Program-made: the position numbers and the translations under genes
Shown: positions 365 to 20,899 of the stretch, one piece after another
Layout of the letters: each line of letters opens with the position of its first letter
How positions within the stretch are numbered: the stretch's first letter is position 1
Assembly (NCBI GenBank): GCA_002269645.1
Contig: NIVC01001298.1
Span: forward strand, 320,242-349,396
Origin: Macrostomum lignano
Taxonomy: Eukaryota
Direction of reading: 5' to 3'
Length of the DNA: 29,155 nucleotides
The notes under the pieces: model-generated
The model's database searches: none
What the model was told of the DNA's origin: nothing
Seen by the model: the letters and a program-made list of their open reading frames with translations, nothing else

Positions 365-483
365 TGTAGTAACTGAGTCAGAGGCCGTGTTTGCTGTGTA
401 GCCAAACTCTTACAAATCTCGCCGCGCTGGGCACGCGTCTATATATTTTGGAGTTAGAATTGGGGTGGCGGCACCCACCCCAC
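365..483 (-). repeat. 3' LTR, truncated to 119 bp (first 54 nt of U3 lost)
   Basis: Identity to the other LTR stops at 483, where sequence switches abruptly to RT coding sequence (KCRLARSSI). Confidence 0.9.
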
Positions 484-1041
484 CGATGCTGCTGCGCGCC
501 AGTCGGCATTTTCGAGCGTTCAGCGTGATGCCGTGCTGCGCCAGGCGGGCCAGACATGCCTCGAGGCTGCTGTTGTGCTCCGCCATCGTGCGCCGAACAC
601 GACCACGTCGTCGTGGATCCATTTGACGTTGGGCAGGCCTGCCAGCACTCGACTCATCACATTCTGCAGGATCTCCTGGGAGGTGGACAAGCCCATGCAT
701 AGCCGGGTGAGACGGCGAAGCCCGCGAGGCGTCGAGAATGTTAGCAGGTTGCGGCATTTCTCGGCGACAGGCACCTGGTAGAACGCCTTCGCGATGTCCA
801 GCTCTGAGAACACAGTGCTGCCAGCCATGTCCCCGGTCACCTCCTCGAAAGTCGGAATCTGGTGTCGCTCGCGGATGACAAAGCGGTTGACATCGCGGAG
901 GTCCTGCGTGATGCGCACCTCGCCCGGCTCCTTCTTGGGCACGACGACCATCCGCGCGACCCACGACGCCGGGCCGTCGACGGGCTCAATGATCCCGAGC
1001 TGCTCTAACAGCTGCAGTTCCTTGTCCACCGCATCTGCCAG
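484..1041 (-). pseudogene. pol: Reverse transcriptase fragment (frameshifts at ~1041 and ~591, truncated at 484)
   Basis: IIEPVDGPASWVARMVVVPKK, DLRDVNRFVIRERHQIP, FSELDIAKAFYQV, TFSTPRGL, WIHDDVVVFG, then EHNSSLEACLARL..LNARKC. Confidence 0.9.
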
Positions 1042-2452: not shown

Positions 2453-2465
2453 GATTTTTAAAGGT

Positions 2466-2483
2466 TCAGTTCTTGCGACGCCA
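2466..2483 (-). promoter_or_regulatory. Primer-binding site (TGGCGTCGCAAGAACTGA); cognate tRNA not identified
   Basis: Starts with TGG one nt after the LTR-terminal CA, 31 nt upstream of the gag ATG at 2452. Confidence 0.7.
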
Positions 2484-2484
2484 T

Positions 2485-2657
2485 TGTAGTAACTGAGTCA
2501 GAGGCCGTGTTTGCTGTGTAGCCAAACTCTTACAAATCTCGCCGCGCTGGGCACGCGTCTATATATTTTGGAGTTAGAATTGGGGTGGCGGCACCCACCC
2601 CACTCCGCAGCCAATCAGACTGCTCGGGCGTACCATACTGTGCATACGCACACTACA
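2485..2657 (-). repeat. 5' LTR, complete, 173 bp
   Basis: TG...CA with 6-bp terminal inverted repeat. On the element strand it carries CTGATTGGCT (reverse CCAAT), GGGGTGGG and TATATA. Confidence 0.92.
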
Positions 2658-3164
2658 GGGAGATGGGTGTGAGAGATGGGTGGGGGGATGGGTGTGGGGA
2701 GATGGATGTGGGGAGATGAGAGTGGGGAAGATTGGTGTGGAGAGATACGAGGTGTGTGGAGATGGATTTGGGGATATGGGTGTGGGGAGATGGATGTGGG
2801 GAGATGGGTGTGGGAGATGGGTGTTGGAGATGGGTGTGGGGATATGGGTGTGGGGATATGGGTTTGGGGATATGGGTGTGGGGAGATGGATTTGGGGATA
2901 TGGGTGTGGGGAGATGGATGTGAGGAGATGGGTTTGGGGAGATGGGTGTGGGAGATGGGTGTCGGAAGATGGGTGTGGGAGATGGGTGTGGGAGAAGGGT
3001 GTGGGAGATGGGTGTGGGAGATGGGTGTCGGAAGATGGGTGTGGGAGATGGGTGTCGGAAGATGGGTGTGGGAGATGGGTGTCGGAAGATGGGTGTGGGA
3101 GATGGGTGTCGGAAGATGGGTGTGGGAGATGGGTGTCGGAAGATGGGTGTGGGAGATGGGTGTG
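2658..3164. repeat. G-rich minisatellite GGGAGATGGGTGTG, right part, with GGGTGTCGGAAGAT variants
   Basis: Direct tandem repetition ending ~30 nt before the acceptor at 3192-3193. Confidence 0.95.
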
Positions 3165-3193
3165 GCAGCTGAATTTCTCACCTGACTCCCCAG

Positions 3194-3988
3194 ATCGACC
3201 GCAAGCGCGCCGCCCTGCCCAACTGCCTTGACGTGCGGCAGCCGAACTTCCTGGTCAGCAGCGCCTGCTACCTCGCACTGAAGAAATTCGTGGCGCAGCG
3301 GGCGGACACCAGCGGCTGCCGCAGCCAGTGCGAGCAGCGAGCCTACTCCATCCAGGTGACCGGGACCAAGTGGCCCCTGCAGAGCAACATCCAGTCCATG
3401 GTGAAGATGATGATCAAGTCCAGGCTGGCGGAGCTGGAGGCCGAGTACGGCCGGCCGATGTACGGCCTGCGCTACATCCAGCAGGTTGACGCGCTGCTGC
3501 AGGAGGCCCCAGCTGCCAACGCCAGCTCCGGGGCGGCCGCGCTGATGAAACCCTTCAACCATTCGGTGTTCGACAGCGTCCAGATGGACATGAACTCCAC
3601 GCAGCTCAGCCTGCTGAACAAGCTCAGCAGCATCGTCACCTCGAACTTCGTGAAGCTGCAGGTGCGCGCGGACTCAAACACGGTGCAGTCAATCATCGAG
3701 ACGCACAAGTACGCTCTGAGCAACGTCATGAGCGAGATCGGAGGTCTGCTCGGCCTGTACCTGGGCTGGAGCGCCATGACCTTCGTGGAGCTGCTGCATC
3801 TGCTGCATCTCATGTGCCGCTTCGTCTCCTACAGGCTGGCCGGCCGCGCCGGCAGGGCGGCTGGCGGACCGGCGCCCGACCGAGCCGCGGAGGAGGCGCT
3901 CGAAGTGCCGAGTGTCTCCGGCTCGCTGAAGCCGGTGCGCGTGCACCCGGCGGGTGGGGACAGCGGGGAGAGCAGAATGGCCTGGTAG
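3194..3988 (+). CDS. Last coding exon of a DEG/ENaC/ASIC-family cation channel (upstream exons outside window)
   Basis: Acceptor ctccccAG|ATC. Cys-rich ectodomain (C..C..CRSQC), NFVKLQV, and TM2 signature SEIGGLLGLYLGWSAMTFVELL. Stop TAG at 3986-3988. Confidence 0.9.
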   Translation: MDRKRAALPNCLDVRQPNFLVSSACYLALKKFVAQRADTSGCRSQCEQRAYSIQVTGTKWPLQSNIQSMVKMMIKSRLAELEAEYGRPMYGLRYIQQVDALLQEAPAANASSGAAALMKPFNHSVFDSVQMDMNSTQLSLLNKLSSIVTSNFVKLQVRADSNTVQSIIETHKYALSNVMSEIGGLLGLYLGWSAMTFVELLHLLHLMCRFVSYRLAGRAGRAAGGPAPDRAAEEALEVPSVSGSLKPVRVHPAGGDSGESRMAW

Positions 3989-3992
3989 GTGG

Positions 3993-4813
3993 GAGATCCG
4001 GGATCGGAAAGAAATTCGGGATCTGACAGTCCGGGAGCGGGATTTGGGATCTGACAGTCTGGGAGCGGGATTTGGGATCTGAGTCTAGAAGCGGGATTTG
4101 TGATCTGACAGCATAGGATCTGGAATTGGAATCTGACAGTCTGGGAGCGGCATCCGGGATCTGAGAGTCTGGGAGCGGGATCCACGATCTGACAGTCTGG
4201 GAGCGGGATCCAGGATCTGACAGTCTGGGAGCGGGATCCAGGATCTGACAGTCTGGGAGCGGGATCCGGGATCTGAGAGTCTGGGAGCGGGATCCAGGAT
4301 CTGACAGTCTGGGAGCGGGATCCAGGATCTGACAGTCTGGGAGCGGGATCCAGAATCTGACAGTCTGGGAGCGGGATCCGGGATCTGAGAGTCTGGGAGC
4401 GGGATCCGGGATCTGACAGTCTGGGAGCGGGATCCAGGATCTGACAGTCTGGGAGCGGGATCCAGGATCTGACAGTCTGGGAGCGGGATCCAGGATCTGA
4501 CAGTCTGGGAGCGGGATCCAGGATCTGACAGTCTGGGAGCGGGATCCAGGATCTGACAGTCTGGGAGCGGGATCCAGGATCTGACAGTCTGGGAGCGGGA
4601 TCCAGGATCTGACAGTCTGGGAGCGGGATCCAGAATCTGACAGTCTGGGAGCGGGATCCGGGATCTGACAGTCTGGGAGCGGGATCCAGGATCTGATATT
4701 CTGGGAGCGGGATCCAGGATCTGACAGTCTGGGAGCGGGATCCAGAATCTGACAGTCTGGGAGCGGGATCCGGGATCTGAGAGTCTGGGAGCGGGATCCG
4801 GGATCTGACAGTC
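3993..4813. repeat. 28-bp minisatellite GGGAGCGGGATCCAGGATCTGACAGTCT, ~29 copies
   Basis: Period 28 (e.g. 4201 vs 4229); begins just after the channel stop codon. Confidence 0.95.
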
Positions 4814-5196
4814 GGACAGGATTGCCACCACACTGCACAATACAATTCAAAGAAACAACGCTTACAAACTCCCAATGCCCAGAATAGAATGTATTATTCA
4901 GTTGCAATGCCTGACACTCGCACACGATATTTCCAGATTTACATGTACCACTACTGTAACTACATGTAGTAGCACAAAAGTATTGCTAAAATCTTGCACC
5001 CGTAAAGCACGCACACATGTTCGCTGGCACACCCTGATATTGCGATGGCTGGAAAGCGATTACTTGGCAATCGTGACCTTATCGACTCAATAAGATTAAT
5101 AATAATTTTCTGCACTGAAGATCCTGCATTAAGCAGAGTATTTTTTGACTTCTAAATTTCGATCTCTGTGGACTCCTGCACAGTCAGCAGCAATAT

Positions 5197-5202
5197 TTAT
5201 TT
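5197..5202 (-). terminator. Candidate AATAAA poly(A) signal for SMAD4
   Basis: TTTATT on + in an AT-rich tract ~640 nt downstream of the SMAD4 stop. Confidence 0.35.
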
Positions 5203-5556
5203 TTAGATAGAACAGGACACAGACGGTTAAATATAGCATTTTATGCATAAATAATATGTACTAATTATATTTACTAATATACGAGTCAGCAAACTACACC
5301 AACAGGCGGACAAAAATTGCACACAGAGCATCTCCTGAGAACGGCTAAGAAATGAGAAAAATCTTGTCGATAAAAGCGGCATAGATGACAGTTGACTGAC
5401 TGCAGACAGGCTGTACAAGTTGTGTTGCTAAAAATTGCTACCACATATGACAAGCAACTACTGACTGAGTAGTACAGCTGGCGTTTATATACACAAAAAC
5501 AACTGTACAATAAGGAGAGAATGAAGACGTAATACTCGCTTGATGCAAGCTTCAGC

Positions 5557-5840
5557 CCTGACAATGCGAGAGTCAGCTGACCCACCAGCCTGACAATGTG
5601 AGAGTCAGCTGACCCACCAGCCTGACAATGCGAGAGTCAGCTGACCCACCAGCCTGACAATGCGAGAGTCAGCTGACCCACCAGCCTGACAATGTGAGAG
5701 TCAGCTGACCCACCAGCCTGACAATGTGAGAGTCAGCTGACCCACCAGCCTGACAATGCGAGAGTCAGCTGACCCACCAGCCTGACAATGTGAGAGTCAG
5801 CTAACCCACCAGCCTGACAATGTGAGAGTCAGCTGACCCA
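5557..5840. repeat. 32-bp minisatellite CCTGACAATG(C/T)GAGAGTCAGCTGACCCACCAG, ~9 copies
   Basis: Direct repetition abutting the SMAD4 stop codon. Confidence 0.95.
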
Positions 5841-6161
5841 TCAGGAGTCGCTGACGGGCAGACTCTGCAGCAGGTCATCCAGCAGCTTGAGCGGCAGGTG
5901 CAGCTGCACTTCAATCCAGCAGGGCGCCTCCCGGATAGTCTTGCGCGGGTAGTCGGGCCCCCAGCCCTTCACGAAGCTCAGACGCAGCTGGCACAGCCGC
6001 CGGCGAAGCTCGTCAACAGCGGCGCCCTGGAGACGCGGCCCGGCCGGCAGCGAAGTGAAGGACGAAGATGTGCTGGTTGCCGCGGCGGTGGCCAGGGAGG
6101 CGCGATGGGCCTGGAGAGCCTGGGTGCGCATCTCCGAGTAGCACTGGCGGATGTCGAAAAC
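5841..6161 (-). CDS. SMAD4: SMAD4 last exon (VFDIRQC..LPVSDS*)
   Basis: ccccgtcAG|GTT acceptor; TGA at 5841-5843; 321 nt. Confidence 0.93.
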   Translation of the reverse strand, partial: VFDIRQCYSEMRTQALQAHRASLATAAATSTSSSFTSLPAGPRLQGAAVDELRRRLCQLRLSFVKGWGPDYPRKTIREAPCWIEVQLHLPLKLLDDLLQSLPVSDS

Positions 6162-8808
6162 CTGACGGGGTGTCGGGACCACAGGTGGGCGTGCGTAAAC
6201 TGCGCGTTCGAGCATCAACTTGCTGAATAAATTTTTAGGCACTACTAATAGTAGAAGAGCCGTATACATGCACAAAAACCACACAGTACACATGCACTAA
6301 TATCACACGGTACAGATGCACCAATACCACACAGTACACATGCACGAAAACCACACAGTACACATGCACCAATACCACACAGTACACATGCACGAAAACC
6401 ACACAGTACACATGCACCAATACCACACAGTACACATGCACGAAAACCACACAGTACACATGCACCAATACCACACAGTACACATGCACGAAAACCACAC
6501 AGTACACATGCACCAATACCACACAGTACACATGCACGAAAACCACACAGTACACATGCACCAATACCACACAGTACAGATGCACGAAAACCACACAGTG
6601 CACATGCACTAATACAATGCAGTACAGATGCACCAAAACCTCACAGTACAGATGCACCAAAACCACACAGTACACATGCACCAATACCATACAGTGCACA
6701 TGCACTAATACAATGCAGTACAGATGTACCAAAACCACACAGTACACATGCACCAATACCACACAATACACATGCACCAAAACCACACAGTACAGATGCA
6801 CAAATACCACACAGTACACATGCACCAAAACCACACAGTACAGATGCACAAATACCACACAGTACAGATGCACCAATACCATACAGTGCACATGCACCAA
6901 TACCATACAGTGCACATGCACTAATACAATGCAGTACACCTGCACCAAAACCACACAGTCCAATGCACTAAATAACTTAATACGAGTAAATGTACTTATT
7001 CAGTTCGCAACTCTTATTTATTGGTCAACCAGCGCCAACCTTAATGTAAGTCCCAGGATAAATCTTGTGCACCAGATCGCCAGACGCCCGCCCGGCCTCC
7101 CGGTCCAGGAAGGCGGTGCTGACGAACACGGCGTGGTCGGAGAGGACCGCAGCCAGACGTCTCCGTCGCCAACCAGGCTCAGTTGGACGCCTTTGCCGAT
7201 GTGCAGCCGGGCGCGCTCGGCCACGTCGCTGCGGTGCACGTTGCTGAGCTGGCCGAGGCAGAACCGGTGGCTGGAGGACGGGTCCGTGTAGCCGTCAATG
7301 GTGACCGTGGCCTGCTGGTAGGGCGCCTTGAATGTGTCGCCGATCTGAAGGGCGTGATTCGCCGACAATTTGAGAACGTTCGATGAAATCTGCGTGCTAT
7401 GTAAAGATGGGGATTTCCCATGGGGTGTGTGTACACAGGAGGGTGGGGATTTCCCATGGGGTGTGTGTACACAAAAGGGGATTTCCCATGGGGTGTGTAC
7501 ACAAGAGGGAGGGATTTACCATGGGGTGTGTGTACACAGGGGAGGGGATTTCCCATGGGGTGTGTGTACACAAGGGGAGGGGATTTCCCATGGTGTGTGT
7601 ACACAAGGGGAGGGGATTTCCCATGGTGTGTGTACACAAGGGAGGGGATTTCCCATGGTGTGTGTGTACACAAGGGGAGGGGATTTCCCATGGTGTGTGT
7701 ACACAAGGGAGGGGATTTCCCATGGTGTGTGTACACAAGGGAGGGGATTTCCCATGGGGTGTGTACACAAGGGAGGGGATTTCCCATGGGGTGTGTACAC
7801 AAGAGGGAGGGATTTACCATGGGGTGTGTACACAAGAGGGAGGATTTACCATGGTGTGTGTACACAAGGGGAGGGGATTTCCCATGGGGTGTGTACACAA
7901 GGGGAGGGGATTTCCCATGGTGTGTGTACACAAGGGAGGGGATTTCCCATGGGGTGTGTACACAAGGGGAGGGGATTTCCCATCGGGTGTGTGTACACAA
8001 GGGGAGGGGATTTCCCATGGGGTGTGTACACAAGGGGAGGGGATTTCCCATGGGGTGTGTACACAAGAGGGAGGGATTTACCATGGGGTGTGTGTACACA
8101 GGGGAGGGGATTTTCCATCGGGTGTGTGTACACAGGGGGGTGGGGATTCCCATGGGGTGTGAATACAAGGGGGAGGGGATTTCCCATGGTGTGTGTACAC
8201 AAGAGGGAGGTATTTCCCATGGGGTGTGTACACAAGAGGGAGGTATTTCCCATAGGGTGTGTACACAAGGGGAGGGGATTTCCCATGGGGTGTGTACACA
8301 AGAGGGAGGGTAGTTCCGAAATGTTGAGGGCTTTCTACTTTCAGATCTATTCCCAATTTAAAGTAAACAATGGTCATACCCGCTCCGTCTGCTCATAGTA
8401 GGAGATGCTGCACCAGAACAGCAGCTGCTGCTGCGGTATCGGCGGCAGCGCCGTCTGCTTCGCCACCGCGGCTGCCCCGGCCGACTGTTGCTGCGGCATC
8501 AACAGCGGCGGCAGCGGCGGTGAAATTCCCTCGATGCCGCCGTGATCGTCCGTGGGCCCGGAGTCCTCGTCCAGGCTGAGCGACGACAGCTCCAGGCCGG
8601 TGCAGGCGATGCGCTCGTAGTGGTGCGGGTTCACGCAGACCGCGTCCTGCTTCAGGTCGAAGGCGAACTGGCACTGGCGGGTGTGCCGCAGCTCGTTCTT
8701 GTGCAGGTCCGGCCAGCGCCAGATGCGCGCGTACACCACGTGAGGAAAGCCTTTGCGGCCAGCCACCTGGGGGAGAGGGGTGGCGATTGAGGGATGGACA
8801 GACAGTCG

Positions 8809-8840
<32 letters not shown>

Positions 8841-9227
8841 GGCAGACAGACAGACAGACAGACAACAGACAGACAGACAGACAGGCAGACAGACAGACAG
8901 ACAGACCTGCAGCCGGCCGTCTAGAGTCCTGGGGATGGTGACGCAGATGCCGGGCTGGGCGCCGTTGCTGGTCACCGCCAGGATCAGCGCGTCCAGCTCG
9001 TCGCGCTTGTCCTTGAGCTTCTTCACCAGCGACTCGACCGCCTTCCGACTGAAGCTCTCGGAATCCGGGCCGCCCTGCCGGTGGCACATCAGCGAGTGCA
9101 CGATGGACAGGCAGGCATCCGATGACGTCACCGGCGACGCGACGCCAACGGCGGAGACTGGAGAGGTCGCGGCGCTGGCAGCTGGGGCCAGGGACAGCAG
9201 TGGCTGCTGCTGCTGCTGACTGGGAAT
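5841..9227 (-). CDS. SMAD4: SMAD4/Medea (co-SMAD); exons 8907-9227, 8380-8766, 7040-7344 (1 nt short), 5841-6161; ~445 aa; start codon not located
   Basis: MH1 [25 protein letters not shown]|[20 protein letters not shown]; MH2 [31 protein letters not shown]; no C-terminal SSXS. All introns GT-AG, phase 0. Confidence 0.95.
6275..6958. repeat. 24-bp minisatellite CACACAGTACACATGCAC(CAATAC/GAAAAC), partly alternating as a 48-bp dimer
   Basis: Fills the SMAD4 intron 6162-7039. Confidence 0.95.
7040..7344 (-). CDS. SMAD4: SMAD4 MH2 exon ([16 protein letters not shown]) with an apparent -1 frameshift at 7145/7146
   Basis: ttcAG|ATC and AAG|GTTGGC; 305 nt. Restoring one G gives [13 protein letters not shown] as in SMAD4 orthologues. 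Confidence 0.9.
7406..8310. repeat. ~32-35 bp minisatellite GGGGATTTCCCATGGGGTGTGTACACAAGGGA
   Basis: Fills the SMAD4 intron 7345-8379. Confidence 0.95.
8380..8766 (-). CDS. SMAD4: SMAD4 exon: MH1 second half, short linker, start of MH2
   Basis: ctctcccccAG|GTG to CGG|GTATGA; 387 nt. Confidence 0.92.
8797..8906. repeat. (GACA)n microsatellite filling most of the 140-bp SMAD4 intron
   Basis: ~27 tetramers; the intron donor GTCTGT is itself the first repeat unit. Confidence 0.95.
8907..9227 (-). CDS. SMAD4: SMAD4 first identifiable coding exon; 5' boundary inferred
   Basis: Conserved MH1 from 9131 down; frame open up to a TGA at 9264-9266; pyrimidine-rich acceptor cccgccttcccctcaactgcAG| at 9228-9229. 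Confidence 0.75.
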
Positions 9228-9324
9228 CTGCAGTTGAGGGGAAGGCGGGCATTTCGGCTGCCTTCAGAGGTCTGAAGGATGTCTTTCGAACCATTTGTAT
9301 GAGCTTACAGAGCCGAGGAGCTGG

Positions 9325-9560
9325 GAAGGCAGTGGCCCAGCAACTGAGGATTTGGAAGAGCAGTGGCCCAGCAACTGAGGATTTGGAAGAGCAGTGGCCC
9401 AGCAACTGAGGATTTGGAAGGGTGGCCCAGCAACTGAGGATCTGGGAGAGCAGTGGCCCAGCAACTGAGGATCTGGGAGAGCAGTGGCCCAGCAACTGAG
9501 GATCAGGGAGAGCAGTGGCCCAGCAACTGAGAAGCTAGGAGAGTAGTGGCCCAGCCTGAG
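9325..9560. repeat. 31-bp minisatellite CAGTGGCCCAGCAACTGAGGATTTGGAAGAG, ~7 copies
   Basis: Period 31 (9361 vs 9392). Confidence 0.93.
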
Positions 9561-9956
9561 GATCTACAGGCCTTAGCAGAAAATGGACCCCAAAATTGTT
9601 CAGAAATCAGAAAGTCCGAGTCGGATAAAATCAAACACGAGAAAGGCGTATTTATTTTTGTTTTAGCCAGCTTGACGCATTGAGGGGAGACAATTAAGAC
9701 GGTGCATTTAACAAAATGCTAAGCTAACTAAAAACTTACAGAAATGTCAGCGGTTCAGCAGTGCAAGTGCACTTGGAATTTTAATTGTAGGGCACAGTGG
9801 CGGAGAGTGCTATTGAATAAGGGTGAGTATAGTGAAGCAGAAGGACCAGTTAGCATTTCAGCATTGAATAATCTTTCAGATATAAGCACGCTGCTTTCGA
9901 AGAAACTCATTTGATGTGACTGCGCTTAGAAACTTTTTTACATGTACATTGCAATG

Positions 9957-10598
9957 AGGTTTTTGTGGGGCCGTGTGTACACTAGGGGGTAGGGGTTTTG
10001 TTGGGCCGTGTGTACACTAGGGGGTAGGAGTTTTGTTGAGCCGTGTGTACACTAGGGGGTTGGGGTTTAGGAGTTTTGTTGGGCCGTATGTAATAGGGGG
10101 TAGGGGTTTTGTTGGGCCGTGTGTACACTAGGAGGTAGGGGTTTTGTTGGGCCGTGTGTACACTAGGGGGTAGGGGTTTTGTTGGGCCGTGTGTACACTA
10201 GGGGGTAGGGGTTTTGTTGGGCCGTGTGTACACTAGGGGGTTGGGGTTTAGGAGTTTTGTTGGGCCGTATGTAATAGGGGGTAGGGGTTTTGTTGGGCCG
10301 TGTGTACACTAGGAGGTAGGGGTTTTGTTGGGCCGTGTGTACACTAGGGGGTAGGGGTTTTGTTGGGCCGTGTGTACACTAGGGGGTAGGGGTTTTGTTG
10401 GGCCGTGTGTACATTAGGGGGTAGGGGTTTTGTTGGGCCGTATGTAATAGGGGGTAGAAGTTTTGTTGGGCCGTGTGTACACTAGGGGGTAGGGGTTTTG
10501 TTGGGCCGTGTGTACACTAGGGGGTAGGGGTTTTGTTGGGCCGTGTGTACATTAGGGGGTAGGGGTTTTGTTGGGCCGTATGTAATAGGGGGTAGGGT
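9957..10598. repeat. 35-bp minisatellite GGGGTTTTGTTGGGCCGTGTGTACACTAGGGGGTA, ~18 copies
   Basis: Period 35 (10141 vs 10176). Confidence 0.95.
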
Positions 10599-11550
10599 TC
10601 ATGATAATTAAGGCGTTTCTCTCTGCCACTAAGGCTGCTGTGGAATTTTTAATTTAAGTTTCATCACGGAAAGGCATCACAGCTACATTTAGTGAAGGAA
10701 AGTACGTCATGCATTTATAATAATGTATACAAGTTGAATTGCAGACAGTACAAAAGAGGGAGAGGTGCAGCACAGCTAAACGGGGGTTACGCCGACTGCA
10801 AACTGAAAAATGAGAGTAATAAAAATTAACAAACTTAATAAATAAAAAAATATTTAGAGAACAAAAGGCACGGATCAGGGTTTAACTAGCAGGGCATGTG
10901 ATTTATTATGTAGTCACAAACTCGAGAACCGCAAAGGAATGCTCGAATACATAAAAAAGACATTGAAAAAATCAGGTGGTCGAGCAGGTGACAGACAATC
11001 CAGGGCCATCGGACGGAGTAAAATTTACAGTTTTTTAATTACAAAAAAACGAGGTGCAACAATGTGCACTGGATAAATTTGCTCCATCAAAATAGGGAGC
11101 AGTGATGATTAGTAAATATGGATACGAGGCGATTAAATATATTAGTTCAACGGCCTGCGCATCTAGGTGCTACGTTGATATGCAGCGGCAGTCGCAACAC
11201 ACTGCTGCTAGTAGAAAAAGACCAGTGCGAGCCAGTAGTGAGAAAAACGGATAGCAAAAAACACAAAAGACAGCAAAGGCTGTAGAAGCAAACTAAACAA
11301 TCATTAACTAAATGAACTGAAGAGCGAAACAGTTTGCCAAATTAGAACGGGTGGACAAAGTCAGTCACGGAATTAAGGAATAAAACAGATTGTTGGAAAG
11401 CGGGCTCAGGGTCACGGGAGCTGGCACAGCACTAGGTAATTAGCGGTTAAAATAGAAAAGACTATATTAAATATCTAAACACCGCGTCAGCCAATCAGAA
11501 TAGAGACTCAGCAATAAACCAATCAAAATCATTTCAAACCTGCCGATTCA

Positions 11551-11556
11551 TTTATT
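11551..11556 (-). terminator. Candidate AATAAA poly(A) signal for PCM1
   Basis: TTTATT on +, ~410 nt downstream of the PCM1 stop, just beyond the 20-bp array. Confidence 0.45.
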
Positions 11557-11604
11557 CACTATACTAAAATGAGTTGATTCTATCTTAAGAATTATATTCT
11601 AAAG

Positions 11605-11895
11605 CCTAGCCAATCAGAATCAAGCCTAGCCAATCGGAATCAAGCCTAGCCAATCAGAATCAAGCCTAGCCAATCAGAATCAAGCCTGGTCAATCAGAAT
11701 CAAGCCTAGCCAATCAGAATCAAGCCTAGCCAATCAGAATCAAGCCTAGCCAATCAGAATCAAGCCTAGCCAATCAAAATCAAGCCTGGTCAATCAGAAT
11801 CAAGCCTAGCCAATCAGAATCAAGCCTAGCCAATCAGAATCAAGCCTAGCCAATCAGAATCAAGCCTAGCCAATCAAAATCAAGTCTAGCCAACC
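11605..11895. repeat. 20-bp minisatellite AGCCAATCAGAATCAAGCCT, ~14-15 copies
   Basis: Direct repetition; degenerate copies extend to 11970. Confidence 0.95.
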
Positions 11896-11965
11896 AGAAT
11901 CACACAATTTAGAATGTAGTCAAGTCAAAAGCCAGCCAATCAGAACAAAGCCAGGGCGCAGCCAA

Positions 11966-12298
11966 TCAGGACTCAGTCTCCTCAGCCGTGGCGTCCTTCA
12001 GCGTGACCGTGACGAAGCCGTTGTTGCTCTTGCCATCAGCCGAGGACACCTCGTACTGGTCGGCGTCGGCCGCGGCCGAGCCAACTAGGCCAGCCCCGTT
12101 CTCGGGCCCGACCAGCGTCTCCAGCATCTCGGAGCGCAAGTCGGCAGCTGGTGGCGACTCTCCGCCATCGCCGCTGCCGCTGCCGCCGTCGCCAGTCTCA
12201 GCCTCGACTGCCTGAGCAGCCTGGACCTGAGGCCGCTTCTCGCTAGGCCGCTGCGCGTCCTTCTCCTCGGCGTCGATTACCGCGGCCACCGCGGTGAG
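11966..12298 (-). CDS. PCM1: PCM1 exon 9 (terminal)
   Basis: cgccgccAG|CTC; ends ..FVTVTLKDATAEETES, TGA at 11966-11968. Confidence 0.8.
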   Translation of the reverse strand, partial: LTAVAAVIDAEEKDAQRPSEKRPQVQAAQAVEAETGDGGSGSGDGGESPPAADLRSEMLETLVGPENGAGLVGSAAADADQYEVSSADGKSNNGFVTVTLKDATAEETES

Positions 12299-15200
12299 CT
12301 GGCGGCGAATCGGAGAGTTTAGGACACTTATTTGATGCCAACACCCGCCAATGCCTACTTGTAGTAGTAATTGACAGTCAAAGTTCTTAGCGGGATAATT
12401 TTTCCAGCAAGTTACTAATATCGCGGAGCAAGAGATTTTAAGTGCATTGTGATGCATCCCAGGCCAGTCTTTGTCCTCTATCCCAGCCCAGTCTTTGTCC
12501 TCCTCACCCCTTCCGTATCCTCTCCACCACCGTCGCTGTCGTCACCGGCCGCGGCCACGGAGCCGCCCTCGACCTCCTCCTCTTCGGAGCCGATCAGTGT
12601 CATCTCGCGTGTCTCGCTGGCCGCCAGCTGTACCGCCACGCCGACGTTGCCGCCTTCAGCCTCCTCGTCCTGCTGATCCTCAGCCTCCTCTTCATCAACT
12701 TCCTCCTCTTCATCATAGTCTTCCTCTTCCTCCTCCTCCTCCTCCTCGTCATCGCCAGTTTCCTCCGCTTCGTAGTCGACGCCGCTGCCATCGACACCCT
12801 GCCGGTTGGCCTCATCCAGACTGGCGATCAGGCGGTGGAAGGCCAGTTCGTTGAACAGGGTCTCGCTGAGGTCCACCAGCAGGTCCTCCAGGCAGTCCGT
12901 GAGACGGCGGCCCTGGTATCTGAAAGGCAAAGGGGAACCGATGGGTTTTGGGTCTGGACCAATCAGAGAACAGCAGGCTATTCTGGACCAATCAGAGAAC
13001 AGCAGGCTATTCTGGACCAATCAGAGAACAGCAGGCTATTCTGGACCAATCAGAGAACTGCAGGCTATTCTGGACCAATCAGAGAACAGCTGGCTATTCT
13101 GGACAAATCGGAGAACTGCAGGCTATTCTAGACCAATCAGAGAACTGCAGGCTATTCTAGACCAATCAGAGAACTGCAGGATATTCTAGACAAATCAGAG
13201 AATAGCAGGCTATTCTGGACCAATCAGGGAAATCAGACAGACTCACTTGGCCAGCGCGTCGGTCACCAGGCTGGTAAGCTGCCGAGAGAACAGCCGCTCA
13301 AACTCGTCGTCGGAGTCAGCCGACCGCGCCATCGTGGCCGCGGCCGCTGACTGCTGGGCTGCCATGATGAGGCGAACCCGGCGCAGTGCCAGGTCGCGCA
13401 GCCAGGTGAGGAACTGCGGAGTGGCGGTCTCGTGCGCGTGCGCCTTAACCAGCGGGATGAGGTGGTGCACCACCGCTTTGATCTGCGCGTCAAGGCGGCG
13501 ACTGTCGAGCAGCGGCTGGCGTGGCGGCACCGGCGGAGGTGGCGGCTGCTGCTGGCGCCGCTCACGCAGGATTTGCATGGCTCTGCGGGAGATTTGATTC
13601 AGACATAGGCTGGCAGTGTTAAACATAGGATCTAGTCGATAGCAATTCCGACTCCTGCACCAAAGTCCCGGGTTAGATTTTGCGGCCCGGCCACGTGAAC
13701 TTGGGTTTCTCGAACATGAGGGTCAGCCCCATAGGCAGCGTGCACAGGTCTTTCAAAATCCAAATCGCTCACCGGCTGAACTCTAAATCCAAAATCTCTT
13801 GATCTGTGAAACTCCTAAATCACGCACCCCACTTTCCAAACTCCCTAATGAAGTCCCAGATCCCTCACCAGCAAAACTCCCTAATGAAGTCCCAGATCCC
13901 TCACCTGCAAAACTCCCTAATGAGATCCCAGATCCGTCACCTGCAAAATTCACTAATGAAACCCAGATCCCTCACTTGCAAAACTCCCTAATGAAATCCC
14001 AGATCCCTCACCTGCAAAACTCCCTAATGAGATCCCAGATCCCTCACCTGCAAAACTCCCTAATGAAATCCCAGATCCCTCACCTGCAAAACTCCCTAAT
14101 GAGATCCCAGATCCCTCACCTGCAAAACTCCCTAATGAAATCCCAGATCCCTCACCTGCAAAACTTTCTAATGAGATCCCGAATCCCTCACTCTCACCTG
14201 CAAAACTCCGTAACGAAATCCCGAAACTCTCGTCTTCTAAACTCCTAATTCTAAATCCCTCACCTGTCCAGGTGCACTACGGTGTCGCCCAGGGAGTCCC
14301 TGGCAAACAGGGTGCCACCGCTGGCCGCGGCCGCAGCGCTAGGCGTGGTGGACACGGAGCTGCTGGCATCGTAGTAGGCCACGGGCTCTGCGTAGTCGGC
14401 CGCGCCGCCGCCAGCCAGCCGCCGCGCCAGGGCGCGGGCCGCCGCTCGCCTCACCGCGTCTTCGTCGCCAACACCCGCCGCAGTGTTGGAAGTCGCCGTG
14501 GTGGTGGCGTAACTCTCCGAGGGCGTCTGTTCGAAGCCGGCGCCGCCTGCCGCAGCGGAAGCGCCGGTGTCGCGAAGCCACGGCGGCTGGCGACGGCTGC
14601 CACCGGCTGCGCTGCCGACCGAGCTCACCTGCCTGCCGTGGGGTAAAGGGAACGTAGTGACTAGATCTGGTTGCTATGCTCTTGACACTACGCACCTCTG
14701 AATCGGCTGCTATGGTCTAAGTTGGTTGCTATGGTCTGAGTTGGTTGCTATGGTTTGAGTTGGTTGCCATGGTCTGCTAGTTGGTTGCTATGGTTTGAGT
14801 TAGTTGCTATATATTCTGTTAGTTGCTATGCATCCTGAGTTAGTTGCTATGCAGTTAGTTGCTATGCATCTGAGTTAGTTGCTATGCATCCTGGGTTAGT
14901 TGCTATGCATCCTGAGTTAGTTGCTATGCATCCTGGTTAGTTGCTATGCATGAGCTACATCCTGAGTTAGTTGCTATGCATCTGAGTTAGTTGCTATGCA
15001 CTCTGAGTTAGTTGCTATGCATCCTGAGTTAGTTGCTATGCATCTGTTAGTTGCTATGCATCTGAGTTAGTTGCTATGCATTCTGAGTTAGTTGCTATGC
15101 ATTCTGAGTTAGTTGCTATGCATCCTGGGTTAGTTGCTATGCATCCTGGTTAGTTGCTATGCACTCTGAGTTAGTTGCTATGCATTCTGAGTTAGTTGCT

Positions 15201-18200
15201 ATGCATTCTGAGTTTGCTATGCATCCTGAGTTAGTTGCTATGCATTCTGAGTTAGTTGCTATGCATTCTGAGTTAGTTGCTATGCATTCTGAGTTAGTTG
15301 CTATGCATTCTGAGTTAGTTGCTATGCATTCTGAGTTAGTTGCTATGCATTCTGAGTTAGTTGCTATGCATTCTGAGTTAGTACGAACCCCCAATGTTAA
15401 TGGATGACTAGGCTGATGCTCATTTCCGGCTAGGCTCTTTGAATCGTCAAACCCACAGTAATCGGAATAAGAACAGGCGGTTAACTTAAAAGAAGAAATG
15501 ATGGCAAAGCATACCGCACCTGCTCAGGTGCCTGTTGACCAGCTCCTGCAGGGCCAGCAGGGCTCGCTGGCGCAGAAAGTCAGTTGACAGCAGCTGCAGC
15601 TCGCGGAACAGCTCAACCAGGTAGTGGGGCCGAGCCTCGTTTTGTGAGATCAGCGCCGCCACCTCCGAGTAGATGCTCTCCCTCAGGCTCTCAAAGCCGC
15701 CGCGGCCGCCGACACCAGAGCCGCCCGCAGCAGCAGCGACAGCCTCCTCTTCTTCGTCGATCTCTTCCTCCTCGTCCACGTCCTCCTCCTCGTCGTACGG
15801 CACGGGCCCGGTGCCCGCGATGCCCGAGGAGACGCCGCCGCGGCCCAGCGGAGGAGTCCGGCGGCCCCGGAGCTCCTGCTGCCGCTCATCGGCGTAGGGC
15901 AAAGTGCGGGGCGAGCGGAGCGACCCGAGGTCCAGACGGGGCAGCGACTCGGTCTGCGAGCCGGCGGCTGCTGTCGCTGTGGGCTGCTGCTGCTGCTGCC
16001 TGTGGCACTGCTGGTGTGGACAGCTGGGAGGCTGCCAGTACCAGCAGGGCGGTGGCGGTGGTGGAGGCGGCGGCGGCGGCGGCATTCCGGCATGCGGGGA
16101 GTTGAAAGCCGCCAGACCGCTGACCTGCTGAGACAGGCGGCTCATCTCCTGCTGCTGGGCAGCCAGCATGGAGCAGCACTGCTGCAGGCACAGCAGCACC
16201 TGCGTGGCTGAGCCCACACCGCCCAACGGGTCCGGACGGCGTTGCTGGCGCCGGCGCCGACGCGCGTTTGCAGCCTCCTCCTCTTCCTCTTCATCGTCGT
16301 TGTCGTCGTCGTCATCGTCGATGTCCTCCTCTTCCTCCTCGGCGTCGGCCGTGTCCTCAAAGTTGGAGGCCGAAGTGGAGCCGCCCCAGGTGGCCGCGGC
16401 CGAGGCGGTGGTGGCGGCCGTCGGGTCCCCGCCGATGCCGCGCCGGCCGCCACGCAGCTCCTCGCGGAGCAGCTTCTCGGTGCGCATCCGGCCGTAGACG
16501 GTCTCGTTGGTGAGCAGCGAGGTGGTGGCCACCGGCTCCTGGAAGGTGACGCCGGCGCCGCCGACGGTCGCGGGCTCGGCAGCCCTGCGAGCGGCCTGTC
16601 CGCCGTCATCGTCATCGTCTTCGATCTCCTCTTCGTCGTCGTCGTCTTCGTCGCCGACCTCGCGGATTTCGGCAACCCGAACTCCGCCAGCCGACCGGAC
16701 AGCCCCGCCACCGCCACCAGCCCTGGCTTTCTCGGCCGCCTCGACGGCTTCGGCGTCGCGCAGGCGGCTCTGCAGCTGCTCCAGCTGGCCCTGCAGCTCC
16801 GACAGGCGCTCCCGCTCTTCCATGAGCTGGCGCAGCTCCTGGGACTGCTCCAGCACGGCCAGGTCGTACAGCTGCTGCTCCGGCAGGTCGGCCGGGGCCT
16901 CCATGCCGCCAAGGGAGGAGACGCCCTCCAGCAGGGACTGCAGCCTGGCCAGCTTGGCCTTGGCGTCCCGCAGCTGCAGCGCCCGCTGCTGGGTCAGCGG
17001 GTCCGCATCCGCCCACTGCCCGCTGTCGGCCTCGGAGGAGGCGGACGCGCCGCCGCCTTTGAAGCCTCCAGATGAGACAGCAGCAGCGGCAGCAGCGGGA
17101 GCGGCGCCCCTTTCAGAGCCGTCATCGCCGTCCAGGCTGCTGCCGTAGTTCAACAGTCGGCGACGCGCCCGATCCTCCTGCTGCGACATCGTGGCGCTGG
17201 TGGAACTGCGGCCCGACGTGGCCGAGGCCGGGGCCGCCGGCAGCGACGATTTGGCAGCCGCGGCTGCCGCTGCGCCTCCTCGATCGGACGCGGCATCAGA
17301 GTCTGCGGACCGATGAGATTTGGATTTGAGAGAGCTCGAGACGGCACAGCTAAGTTTTAGGCAAGTTATAGGGATCCGGGCCGGTGAGACTGGGATCCGG
17401 GCCGGTGAGACTGGGATCTGGGCCGGTGAGACTGCGATCCGGGCCGGTGAGACTGGGATTCGGACCGGTGAGACTGGGATCGGGGACGTTGAGACTAGGA
17501 TTCGGGCAGGTGAGACTGGGATCCGGGCCGGTGAGACTGGGATCGGGGACGGTGAGACTGGATCAGTCAGAGAGATTTGGAATCTATCAGAGATTGGGGA
17601 TCTTTCAGTGAGATTTGGGATTTGTCAGTGAGATTTGAGATCTGTCAGTGAGATTTGGGATCTGTCAGTGAGATTTGGATTTGTCAGTGAGATTTGGATT
17701 TGTCAGTGAGATTTGGGATCTGTCAGTGAGATTTGGGATCTGTCAGTGAGATTTGGGATCTGTCAGTGAGATTTGGGATCTGTCAGTGAGATTTGGGATC
17801 AAATAGAGGTCAGAAATCATAAATCCAATGACTGACCACCCTGGCCGTGAATGAAGTCGGCCGCTTCCTGATAGTAGGACACCAGCTGCCGGATGCCGCT
17901 CAGGCGGTCCCGCACGGAGCGCAGCTTCTCCAGCTGGGCGCGGGCGTCCATGGCGCCAAGGAGGTTGGCGGCCTCGCCGGCGGTGTTGCTGGCTCGCTGG
18001 GAGCTGGCGAGCGCCTGCGGCAGCAAAGATGGCGGAAGGTTTGAGACTAGTAAACCGTTAAATGCTTAATGCTGTGGTCGAACCTTCCGCAGGTTTTAAA
18101 CGCGCTAAATTACAATCCCCGGAACTACTTCGTATTTCTGCATACATCTTTCATCTGAAGGCATAATCGAACAAAACCTGCTACAGAAACAGCAGGACTA

Positions 18201-20899
18201 CTACAGCCTGTGCTACAGAAACAGCAGGACTACTACAGCATGTGCTACAGAAACAGCAGGATTACTACAGCCTGTGCTACAGAAACAGCAGGACTACTAC
18301 AGCCTGTGCATACACTGTCAAGGTGATTCCCACCTGTTGCTCCGTGCTGGTGGTCGACGCCTCCACCCCAGCGGCCCTGAGGGCGCTCAGTTCGCCAAGC
18401 GCCGCGTCCAGACGCGCCTTCTTGGCCTCCAGGTCAGTCAGGCGGCGCGCCAGCCGCGCCTCCGGGTCCGCCGAGGCGCCAGCGGTGGACGAAGCGGCCG
18501 CCGATGTCACAGTTTCGCGCTCCTCCAGCTCCGAGTCCTCGCGCATCGGCGGCGGCGGCGGAGGCGGCTGGTCGTCATCCTCCTCTTCCTCGTCATCCTC
18601 GGCTTCGGCAGCAGCGGCCAGCCGGCCGGCCAGCTTGGCGCCGGCCTCGGCGCGCATCGTCTCACGCTGCCTGGCCAGATGCAGCTGGCGCCGCTGCTCC
18701 GCCTGCTCGCCCTGCATGGCGGCCACCGCCTGGCCCTGCTTGGCCCGCAGCCGCTCCTGGCGCAGCAGCATGTCGCGCAGGTTGTCCCGCTGCTCGCGGA
18801 GTTCGCCCAGCTCGCGCCGGCGGCTGCTCAGCGCCTCCTGAGCGTCGGCCTACAGGCACAGCAACAGGGAGTGGCGTGGTTCTGAAACTCTCAGCTTAAG
18901 CTTGATCAACAATAGTTATCACCGACCTGAGGCTGGTGTCACTGACCTCAGGCTGGTGTCACTGATCTCAGGTTTGGGAGTCACTGACCTCAGGTTTGGG
19001 AGTCACTGACCTCAGGTTTGGGAGTCACTGACCTCAGGTTTGGGAGTCACTGACCTCAGGTTTGGGAGTCACTGACCTCAGGCTGGTGTCACTGACCTCA
19101 GGTTTGGGAGTCACTGACCTCTTGTTGAGGTCACTGACCTATCACCTATCCAGGGTGCCCTGGACTCAGAGAGAAAAAGGGCTTAGGAAAGCTTTCATGA
19201 CCTTAAAAAGGTCCCCCAGACTTCAAGAGGCTCGTAAACCTCAGAAATACTTTTCAGACCCTTTTTAAGTCCAGAAAAGCCTTCCTGACTACATGGGGGG
19301 TTTCCAGGCAACAGGGGAGCTTTCATGATCTCAATGAGTTATAGCCCAGACCGGGCCAGACCTGCAAGGCCTGCCGCTCGGCCAGCAGTTTCCGCATCCG
19401 CTCCTGCTCGGACCGCAGCGCCGCCAGCTCTCGCTCGACGCTCTCGTCAACCGGTGCTTCGGAGCCGCCGGTCTCCTCGCCTTCGCCATCAAATTCGTCA
19501 TCATCATCGTCGCCGTCGTCTTCGGCGCCAGAGGCGGGCGGCGCTGCCACGGCGGCCTCCGGCACGTCGCCGCTGCCTGGAAGCAGACGGCCTAGCAAGC
19601 TGATGTACTCCTCCTCCTGGGCGGCCAGCTGCTGCATCAGGCTGTCCAGATTCCTACCCTGTTCGCCGCCAACGGAACGGCGCAGGGCCTGGGCCTGTGG
19701 GGAAGAGAAAGTTTTATTGTCTCGCGTTGCGATTCAAAATAAATTCAGAAGCAAATATACTTTTATTGCCATTTGAAGTAGGATAGTTGAAAGTTTACTT
19801 ATTTAAGTTATCATTTTTATCTAACAAATTGCTACTGCTGCTACTGTCAGTAGAGTAGTGAGAAAAAACTGTAAAATAGAGCTAAAAAATTCTGCTTTGG
19901 CTGCGGCTTGACTCGATGGCGTGGTTTAAAAGCGATTCCCAACATTTATTTTCGCTACCTAAAGTAGGGTAGTCAACGTTTGTCTAAAGTTCCAGGCGGC
20001 ATCAATAAAAAAAGAAATTTTAGTAGGCTCACACACAGATAGTGATTCATCATGCAGACTCTCACACCGGCAGTGACTCATTATGCAGACTCTCACACCG
20101 GCAGTGACTCATTATGCAGACTCACACTAGCAGTGACTCATATAGATTCTCACACTAGCAGTGACTCATATAGATTCTCACACTAGCAGTGACTCACTAT
20201 GCAGACTCTCACACTCACTATGCAGACTCACACTAGCAGACTCATATAGATTCTCACACTAGCAGTGACTCACTATGCAGACTCTCACACTCACTATGCA
20301 GACTCACACTAGCAGACTCATATAGATTCTCACACTAGCAGTGACTCACTATGCAGACTCTCACACTCACTATGCAGACTCACACTAGCAGACTCATATA
20401 GATTCTCACACTAGCAGTGACTCACTATGCAGACTCTCACACTCACTATGCAGACTCACACTAGCAGACTCATATAGATTCTCACACTAGCAGTGACTCA
20501 CTATGCAGACTCTCACAGTCACTATGCAGACTCACACTAGCAGTGACTCATTATTCAGACTCACACTAGCAGTGACTCACTATGCAGACTCACACTAGGA
20601 GTGACTCATTATATAGATTCTCACACTAGCAGTGACTCACTATGCAGACTCTCACACTCACTATGTAGACTTACACTAGCAGTGACTTGAACCCCAGCAA
20701 AGAAAGTTCAACAGGCCACAAAAAGCGAGAAAATTCGCACCTGTCGCTGATAATCCCGAATCTGCAGCAGCTTGGCAACCAGCTCGTTCACATCCCGGCC
20801 ACTGCCAATTGCAACGCGGTCCCCAGCTGGCCGCCTCTGGCCGTCACCAGCGCCGCCTGGGCCCTGTGGCTGTCTGGAGTTGGCGCTGCTCTGAGACAT
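11966..20899 (-). CDS. PCM1: Pericentriolar material 1 (centriolar satellite scaffold); exons 20741-20899, 19362-19694, 18334-18849, 17837-18014, 15520-17302, 14264-14632, 13247-13582, 12508-12919, 11966-12298; 4419 nt, 1472 aa
   Basis: Recognisable PCM1 blocks: LVAKLLQIRDY, EKLRSVRDRLSGIRQLVSYYQ, ATWGGST, SIYSEVAALISQNEARPHYLVELFRELQLLSTDFLRQRAL, LGDTVVHLD, LDAQIKAVV..IP, EDLLVDLSETLFNELAF. All 8 introns GT-AG with matching phases (0,0,0,1,2,2,2,0). Further upstream exons cannot be excluded. Confidence 0.93.
12508..12919 (-). CDS. PCM1: PCM1 exon 8 (C-terminal domain, acidic tract)
   Basis: cctttcAG|A TAC and GGG|GTGAGG; YQGRRLTDCLEDLLVDLSETLFNELAF. Confidence 0.9.
12953..13226. repeat. 29-bp minisatellite CTGGACCAATCAGAGAAC(A/T)GCAGGCTATT
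   Basis: Period 29; fills PCM1 intron 7. Confidence 0.95.
13247..13582 (-). CDS. PCM1: PCM1 exon 7
   Basis: ctcccgcAG|A GCC and AA|GTGAGT; RLDAQIKAVVHHLIP..FSRQLTSLVTDALAK. Confidence 0.9.
13835..14215. repeat. 36-bp minisatellite CCCTCACCTGCAAAACTCCCTAATGA(A/G)ATCCCAGAT, 10 units
   Basis: Within PCM1 intron 6 (13583-14263). Confidence 0.95.
14264..14632 (-). CDS. PCM1: PCM1 exon 6
   Basis: cacggcAG|G CAG and GAC AG|GTGAGG; ends LFARDSLGDTVVHLD. Confidence 0.87.
14700..15381. repeat. ~21-bp minisatellite TGAGTTAGTTGCTATGCATTC
   Basis: Fills PCM1 intron 5; more degenerate at the left end. Confidence 0.95.
15520..17302 (-). CDS. PCM1: PCM1 exon 5 (1783 nt)
   Basis: gtccgcAG|AC TCT and AGC AG|GTGCGG; coiled coils, ATWGGST, start of the conserved C-terminal domain. 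Confidence 0.92.
17370..17800. repeat. Two adjacent minisatellites: 21-bp GGGATCCGGGCCGGTGAGACT (~17370-17560) and 20-bp GTCAGTGAGATTTGGGATCT (~17562-17800)
   Basis: Fill PCM1 intron 4. Confidence 0.93.
17837..18014 (-). CDS. PCM1: PCM1 exon 4
   Basis: tgccgcAG|GCG and GGT G|GTCAGT (an in-phase alternative donor lies 3 nt upstream); AQLEKLRSVRDRLSGIRQLVSYYQE. Confidence 0.87.
18178..18308. repeat. 32-bp minisatellite TGCTACAGAAACAGCAGGACTACTACAGCCTG, 4 copies
   Basis: PCM1 intron 3. Confidence 0.92.
18334..18849 (-). CDS. PCM1: PCM1 exon 3
   Basis: gtgcctgtAG|GCC and CAG|GTGGGA; 516 nt, coiled coil. Confidence 0.87.
18922..19140. repeat. 22-bp minisatellite GTCACTGACCTCAGGTTTGGGA
   Basis: PCM1 intron 2; period 22. 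Confidence 0.93.
19362..19694 (-). CDS. PCM1: PCM1 exon 2
   Basis: ctcttccccacAG|GCC and CAG|GTCTGG; LDSLMQQLAAQEEEYISLL. Confidence 0.88.
20040..20686. repeat. Complex minisatellite (CACTAGCAGTGACTCACTATGCAGACTCTCA family) with a 76-bp higher-order unit
   Basis: 76-bp period seen from 20181 (next copy 20257); PCM1 intron 1. Confidence 0.92.
20741..20899 (-). CDS. PCM1: PCM1 first identifiable coding exon
   Basis: ATG at 20899; DVNELVAKLLQIRDYQRQ|GTGCGA. Confidence 0.8.

Follow-up and report, generated by a model that had tools for sequence, protein, structure and literature searches.

The window analyzed here is a 29,155-nt stretch of the Macrostomum lignano genome (assembly GCA_002269645.1, contig NIVC01001298.1, positions 320,242 to 349,396 of the forward strand), and its subject is a SMAD4 gene on the minus strand. 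The reading frame of this gene contains no start codon of its own ahead of the conserved motif SLMCHR. Based on the sequence of the locus and the existing gene models, it is probable that the SMAD4 pre-mRNA would be trans-spliced to the spliced leader (SL) at 9228/9227 and that the AUG ending the leader would serve as the initiator codon (positions are those of the window, and a slash between bases or positions marks a splice site).

The SMAD4 gene

The MH1 and MH2 segments of SMAD4 were located between 9128 and 5847 on the minus strand by tblastn with human SMAD4 as the query. With splice sites read from the sequence, the gene comprises four coding exons on this strand, with all boundaries in phase 0 and acceptors reading CAG. 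Coding exon 1 (8907..9227) is 321 nt or 107 codons long in phase 0, and its protein segment ends with ...TLDGRLQ, followed by a GT donor. The intron after ...DGRLQ presumably coincides with an intron position of human SMAD4. Coding exon 2 (8380..8766) encodes the remainder of MH1, a short linker and the beginning of MH2. Coding exon 3 (7040..7344) continues MH2 and, at 305 nt, is one base short, while coding exon 4 (5841..6161) encodes the MH2 C-terminus and ends with the stop codon TGA at 5843-5841.

In the conceptual product, Pfam MH1 (PF03165) matches residues 62-161 with E=1.1e-38, and MH2 (PF03166) matches residues 225-427 with E=1.3e-61 once a 1-bp deletion at 7148 has been compensated. 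The best match among solved structures is the human SMAD4 MH1 domain (5mey, E=9.5e-70). In this structure comparison by sequence, SMAD4 scored 237 bits vs ~130 bits for SMAD1/3/5/9, and the best named homologues are all SMAD4/Medea. The C-terminus of the product reads ...LQSLPVSDS, and the R-SMAD-type C-terminal SSXS phosphorylation motif is absent from it. Judged by its domains, its closest relatives and its C-terminus, the predicted gene is a SMAD4, or co-SMAD, and it is one of two M. lignano SMAD4 (co-SMAD) paralogues. It shares the combination of MH1 and MH2 with the SMAD4/Medea co-SMADs, and its MH1 is 65-78% identical to that of SMAD4 from other animals (~69% to human fragments). In contrast to these proteins, the window product is 445 aa long with a very short linker and a poly-Q N-terminal tail, and its gene has no genomic start codon.

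The start region and a candidate acceptor

The MH1 frame is closed by an in-frame TGA (9264..9266, minus strand) located 13 codons upstream of the candidate acceptor and identical in the two other genomic copies of the locus, L002 (NIVC01000939.1) and L003 (NIVC01000290.1). The first in-frame ATG of the gene lies at 9087..9089 (minus strand), where codon 47 encodes the M of the conserved SLMCHR in MH1 helix 1. If this internal Met were the start, the product would lack 14 residues that align to the crystallized SMAD4 MH1. The nearest upstream ATG (9250..9252, minus strand), part of the presumed outron, is read in frame +2 with respect to MH1, and removal of one base would bring it into the MH1 frame. 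A run of four C residues (9238..9241, minus strand) separates this ATG from the acceptor, and the run has three residues in L003 and four in L002. The +2 frame of ATG 9252 is itself open across all of exon 1, for more than 115 codons (9252 down to 8900, minus strand), for which the high GC content probably accounts. On RNA that was not trans-spliced, the open reading frame (ORF) from ATG 9252 would be the first.

The candidate SL trans-splice acceptor, CTGCAG (9228..9233, minus strand), has its AG at 9229-9228 and matches the motif [T/C]TNCAG. A pyrimidine tract precedes the AG, and the exon opens at ATT 9227 in phase 0. The frame from 9227 is open through 107 codons into MH1, such that an SL AUG joined there would be in frame with no intervening stop. 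Between 12100 and 9220, the 2.9 kb of minus strand contain this motif only 6 times, the copy at 9233-9228 being the last. By chance alone, an acceptor would fall in phase 0 in 1 of 3 cases; the weight of this one lies in its combination with the missing ATG and the annotated transcript starts. L002, which is ~5% diverged from the window, repeats the TGA, the out-of-frame ATG, the CCCC run and the acceptor.

These observations bear out the description in an earlier note on this DNA, according to which the MH1 frame is open from TGA 9264-9266 with no ATG until the one inside SLMCHR, a good phase-0 acceptor lies at 9228-9229, and the nearest upstream ATG, at 9250-9252, is out of frame. The last point holds in the window and in L002; in L003 this ATG is in frame, probably through an error.

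Just inside the exon, a (CAG)5 repeat (9204..9218, minus strand) is read as Q5; it has six units in L002 (L002 10001 vs window 9203) and forms part of a 17-nt segment that is missing from the SMAD4 paralogue. A different AG, at 9221-9220, is homologous to the paralogue UTR segment CCCAG/TCA. As an acceptor it was rejected, because it would leave the SL AUG out of frame and does not match the gene-model starts. GC content by codon position did not distinguish among the three frames in the low-complexity N-terminal segment. A homologue search with the 65-aa N-terminus alone was uninformative: its matches were all proteins of other animals, 85-114 aa in length, and the gene's own model was not among them.

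The spliced leader and the predicted mRNA

M. lignano possesses a single 35-nt SL, CGGTCTCTTACTGCGAAGACTCAATTTATTGCATG, whose 3' end is ATG. Trans-splicing affects approximately 30% of its genes, and the leading motif at SL acceptors is [T/C]TNCAG, while GT[AG]AG is the top motif of cis-splice donors, found in 122,399 of the 187,627 cis-splice regions analyzed (PMC8629364). Initiation at an SL AUG has been established in flatworms for Schistosoma mansoni (Cheng, Cohen, Ndegwa and Davis, 2006, J Biol Chem 281:733; cited in PMC9851317, PMC12582326 and PMC5832876). As summarized in PMC9851317, 28% of the trans-spliced S. mansoni transcripts of Cheng et al. (2006) had the SL AUG in frame, and more than 40 cDNAs required it. 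The general premise of the earlier note, that flatworm SLs end in an AUG usable as an initiator, thus agrees both with the M. lignano leader and with the use described in schistosomes.

In the proposed mechanism, the pre-mRNA would be SL trans-spliced at CTGCAG/ATT with the exon starting at 9227, and the outron, with its in-frame TGA and out-of-frame ATG, would be removed. The 35-nt leader ending in AUG would then be joined in phase 0 as ...UUGCAUG/AUU CCC AGU CAG.... The predicted SL-exon junction is TTGCATG/ATTCCCAGTCAG, i.e. ...TTATTGCATG/ATTCCCAGTCAGCAG, with possible CAG-repeat variants of the form ...GCATG/CAGCCACTG. The SL AUG would be the first AUG met by a scanning ribosome, and the product would read M-I-P-S-Q5-PLLSL... 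followed by complete MH1 and MH2, for a total of 445 aa. The earlier note had predicted this fusion of the SL AUG to ATT CCC AGT CAG, giving M-I-P-S-Q.., and the prediction is supported by the SL sequence, the acceptor motif, the phase and the gene models that lack a Met. That SL reads define the 5' end of these models, and that translation in fact begins at the SL AUG, we infer from the same evidence.

Neither the SL nor a fragment of it occurs in the window or in the compared loci. The SL-exon junction TTGCATGATTCCCAGTCAGCAGCAG gave 0 matches in an exact scan of metagenome contigs, an expected result that says nothing either way. No paper was found on this SMAD4 gene or on SL-AUG use in M. 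lignano.

Gene models without a methionine

The GenBank model of the window gene, PAA69714.1 (BOX15_Mlig001167g2), is flagged 'partial' and starts with PSQQQQQ, its CDS beginning at 9224, one codon past the acceptor. The N-terminal 236 residues of the window product are 100% identical to it. The L003 model, PAA86243.1 (Mlig001167g4, NIVC01000290.1), is likewise 'partial' and starts with PSQQQQQ, and the L002 model, PAA74554.1 (Mlig032210g3, NIVC01000939.1), also 'partial', starts with PLLSL just after the CAG repeat. Three UniProt models, A0A1I8GYA9, A0A1I8GG00 and A0A1I8GHM2, which we take to come from the earlier ML2 assembly via WormBase ParaSite, start with IPSQ, that is, at the first codon after the AG. 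A Met is therefore missing from 6 of 6 independent models, which cover three genomic copies and two assemblies; 5 of the 6 start at I (9227) or P (9224), and none of the 6 contains residues of an upstream exon.

The way in which the annotation was made gives these starts their meaning. In the Mlig_3_7 annotation, the SL was trimmed off the RNA-seq reads, the reads were mapped, transcriptional units were cut at peaks of SL reads (TBONE), and ORFs and CDS were called by TransDecoder (PMC5730564). Had upstream genomic sequence been part of the transcript model, the frame would have met the in-frame TGA, and a Met-initiated ORF would therefore result. A 5'-partial ORF that opens at the acceptor thus indicates that the transcript model itself opens there, and with the TBONE pipeline such a start is expected to stem from an SL site. 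The Met-less models that start at the acceptor look like SL-trimmed transcript models. The three GenBank models also carry the locus-tag suffixes g2, g3 and g4, which is consistent with division of a transcriptional unit at an SL site.

The L002 model shows the same one-codon offset if an AG inside its CAG repeat, also in frame, is taken as the acceptor. An AG within the repeat may be used as an alternative in-frame SL acceptor, or the late start may be a read-mapping artefact in the repeat.

Genomic copies and consensus errors

The Mlig_3_7 assembly was made from PacBio reads with Canu and polished with Pilon, and the quality of its consensus bears directly on the reading frames of the start region. 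Between L003 and the window, 14,306 nt were aligned with 0 substitutions and 30 indels, nearly all in homopolymers. L003 and the window represent one sequence that entered the assembly two times, and what sets them apart is consensus error. The duplicated region extends over window 1-14288 and L003 1-14292 of the same assembly. The residual consensus error rate is ~1 indel per 480 bp, and most of these errors are deletions in homopolymers. The diverged copy L002, whose non-coding identity to the window is ~93-96%, was used as an outgroup to polarize the indels between the window and L003. The longer run was the state shared with L002 in 7 of 7 indels in unique sequence (13539, 12249, 11261, 9687, 9241, 8773 and 7148), and in 15 of 17 over all polarizable indels, indicating that the error mode is single-base deletion. 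By this comparison, CCCC at 9241-9238 is probably correct, with ATG 9252 out of frame and L003 in error.

The window has an error of the same kind in exon 3. Its GG run at 7147..7148 (minus strand) is GGG in L002 and L003, where CGG GTC encodes part of ...WLRVLSDH..., and by comparison with these copies the missing base is a 1-bp assembly deletion. This deletion accounts for the splitting of the MH2 exon in tblastn and for the ~100 out-of-frame C-terminal residues and early stop of PAA69714.1. The window and L002 differ at 11 positions of the CDS. In the MH1/MH2 frame 10 of these differences are synonymous, one of them being the change of CCA to CCG at 9183 in the N-terminal tail. The sole nonsynonymous change, D to N, lies near the C-terminus. 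This 10:1 ratio indicates that the SMAD4 gene is functional and under purifying selection.

Alternative sources of the start codon

Several points weigh against initiation at the SL AUG or leave room for other starts. The acceptor at 9228 resembles the gene's own cis acceptors, and sequence alone cannot separate cis- from trans-splicing. The GenBank CDS is offset one codon past the acceptor and the L002 model begins after the CAG repeat, so the exact position of the acceptor rests partly on the UniProt models that start at I. The context of the SL AUG is weak, with U at -3 and A at +4, and leaky scanning or near-cognate initiation may occur. Seven guessed products, among them M+IPSQ..., MQPLL..., MPAFPQLQ..., MCHRQ... 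and the SL read-through VSYCEDSIYCM..., had no exact match in the protein collection, and the supplements of four M. lignano papers have no entry for Mlig001167, Mlig032210 or SMAD4. Finally, L003 reads CCC where the window and L002 read CCCC at 9241-9238, and CCC would bring ATG 9252 in frame.

This last variant is at the center of one alternative, in which CCC is the true sequence and ATG 9252 is the gene's own start on mRNAs that escape trans-splicing at 9228. The earlier note had named a 1-bp error that puts this ATG in frame as an outcome that would overturn its proposal; the variant indeed exists, but is most likely an error of L003 itself. The idea gains from the demonstrable 1-bp error at 7148, at least one such error thus being present in the window, and from the general indel rate of the assembly. 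However, the diverged copy also has CCCC, and the longer run was the shared one in every unique-sequence indel, such that the errors are deletions and L003 is probably the contig at fault. Even if CCC were true, ATG 9252 would fall in the outron, and the 'partial' L003 model PAA86243.1 still starts after the acceptor, so that transcript evidence excludes this ATG; nor do the UniProt models open there. Overall, a start at ATG 9252 is quite improbable. The likeness of acceptor 9228 to cis acceptors leads to another alternative, also foreseen by the earlier note, in which a cis-spliced upstream exon supplies the ATG. Between the stop codon of the upstream PCM1-like gene and the acceptor there are 13 weak phase-0 ATG.../GT candidates, including ATG/GT at 9294-9291; splicing from the ATG at 9294-9292 over a 64-nt mini-intron would yield an identical M-I-P-S. 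None of the 13 has the consensus donor GT[AG]AG, and no open ATG exon ending in phase 0 at such a donor was found in this interval, contrary to what this alternative needs. The lack of upstream-exon residues in all 6 gene models and the g2, g3 and g4 suffixes, which fit a unit cut at an SL site, also speak against it, and its probability is judged to be very low. As a separate observation, the sequence CAAATG/GTTCGA at 9294-9291 (minus strand) resembles the 3' end of the SL exon, GCATG/GTAAG, with a weak donor.

Initiation elsewhere on a trans-spliced mRNA is unlikely. It could occur at a near-cognate codon such as CUG 9200-9198, or by leaky scanning to the internal Met 9089, which would truncate MH1 N-terminally. 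The weak context that can be read off the SL sequence (U at -3) would favor such bypassing, and CTG 9200-9198 is homologous to the start codon of the paralogue. In a scanning model, however, the SL AUG comes first, 32 nt from the cap and in frame, and an out-of-frame AUG at 9118 precedes Met 9089. Use of the latter would delete the 14 residues aligned to the solved MH1 structure, while schistosomes do make use of their SL AUG, as demonstrated by Cheng et al. (2006) according to the later papers that cite this work. Least probable of all is pseudogene decay of the window copy, in which case neither the frameshift in MH2 nor the missing start codon would call for an explanation. The 1-bp deletion in MH2 and the out-of-frame end of the GenBank protein could be read in this way. 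In contrast, the 0 substitutions over 14.3 kb relative to L003, whose MH2 is intact, point to a consensus error and not to divergence; the missing start is common to copies with an intact MH2; and the synonymous excess relative to L002 reflects purifying selection. The pseudogene reading was rejected on the grounds of the identity with the intact L003 and of this selection. Trans-splicing at 9228/9227 with initiation at the SL AUG therefore remains the preferred interpretation.

The paralogue and a proposed loss of the initiator ATG

The second SMAD4 of M. lignano, BOX15_Mlig031006g2, is 591 aa long, ~60% identical to the window protein, and starts with its own Met. Its 5' end (locus L004, ATG at 4210) reads ...GAC TTCCCAGTCA A TGCTGTCCCT AAAC, and the 5' end of the window gene reads ...CAG/A TTCCCAGTCA GCAGCAGCAGCAGCCAC TGCTGTCCCT GGCC. 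The two exact 10-mers, TTCCCAGTCA and TGCTGTCCCT, thus occur in the same order at L004 4200-4225 and window 9226-9190; a single match this long arose in 5 of 5000 shuffles. In the paralogue they bracket the 'A' of the ATG, and in the window there are 17 nt in its place, the CAG repeat included. The codon homologous to the initiator ATG of Mlig031006g2, as placed by the flanking 10-mers, is the CTG at 9198..9200 (minus strand).

The insertion amounts to 16 nt net, with the acceptor located 8 nt upstream of the AG homologous to that in the paralogue's CCCAG/TCA. The sum of the two, 8 + 16 = 24 nt, places the SL AUG in frame. Comparison of the two 5' ends suggests, on a presumed polarity of the change, that the original ATG was lost to the insertion containing the CAG repeat and now appears as CTG 9200-9198, and that the I-P-S-Q of the product derives from what had been 5'UTR. 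In the paralogue, an SL acceptor at CCCAG/TCA would frame the SL AUG one codon before the gene's own ATG.

A fuller scenario can be put forward tentatively, with a little less than an even chance of being right. In it, a co-SMAD start codon would have been lost by a CAG insertion and rescued by an SL acceptor 8 nt upstream, the UTR and the repeat would have become a poly-Q N-terminus, and the output of the gene would depend fully on trans-splicing, with the CAG repeat offering a ladder of in-frame AG acceptors.

Neighboring features

Upstream of SMAD4 and on the same strand lies a PCM1-like gene (11966..19224, minus strand; stop codon 11968-11966), with a 1479 aa model that contains a PCM1_C domain. 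Judging from the numbers in the locus tags, it is probably part of one transcriptional unit with SMAD4, Mlig001167. An AT-rich stretch at 21000-24000 (GC 29-38% vs 55-65% elsewhere), with no ORF of at least 130 aa, is situated either ahead of the 5' part of the PCM1-like region or inside it.

The window is rich in minisatellites, with 56 rows in the TRF (tandem repeat) output, and arrays fill its introns and intergenic space. A 31-nt minisatellite (9315..9565, minus strand) lies in the presumed outron or intergenic region. Together with this array, those at 8797-8906, 7410-8310, 6262-6968, 9961-10597 and 11602-11902 make up most of every SMAD4 intron and of the intergenic space. Their units are (GACA)n and repeats of 33, 24, 31, 35 and 20 nt, and the copy numbers differ between the homeologous copies. 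Two features lie downstream of SMAD4: a retroelement Gag/protease-like ORF (1005-2399, minus strand) with zf-CCHC and a weak aspartyl protease match, and a convergent exon (3233-3988, plus strand) with a match (ASC, E=2e-13) to the C-terminal portion of an amiloride-sensitive sodium channel.

Relation to known trans-spliced genes

The window SMAD4 resembles the SL-AUG genes of S. mansoni, in which the leader also ends in AUG and the acceptor frames this AUG with the main ORF ('slORFs'). Its configuration is also that of the S. mansoni SL-AUG recipients that possess no usable AUG of their own and whose translation depends on trans-splicing. Unlike those cases, the host is a free-living macrostomorph, the gene is a co-SMAD, and the proposal made here draws on the genome and its annotation. 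A further difference is the paralogue that retains its ATG and lets the presumed loss of the start be traced to the CAG-repeat insertion. Initiation at an SL AUG has been known since 2006; the window SMAD4 would be an additional example and would leave the field's view unchanged.

Within M. lignano, the gene shares several features with the trans-spliced downstream or operon genes described previously, specifically an upstream gene on the same strand, the g2 suffix, a [T/C]TNCAG acceptor and a repeat-filled intergenic space (Wudarski et al., 2017, PMC5730564; Ustyantsev and Berezikov, 2021, PMC8629364). Conserved genes are the class enriched among trans-spliced genes, and SMAD4 is conserved. 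In contrast to the M. lignano operons, the intergenic distance is ~2.7 kb, of which ~1.2 kb is minisatellite, and even with the repeats subtracted it exceeds the 1-kb threshold used by those authors. The same two papers do not treat the use of the SL AUG.

If this interpretation is correct, the 'partial' flags and the Met-less UniProt models would arise only from trimming of the SL before ORF calling, and prefixing the SL ATG before that step would complete such models genome-wide. Moreover, the gene would represent the takeover of a start codon by the SL with a visible history, because the paralogue retains its ATG. A gene of an essential pathway would then be wholly dependent on SL trans-splicing for its translation, a dependence that is testable, as M. 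lignano can be made transgenic.

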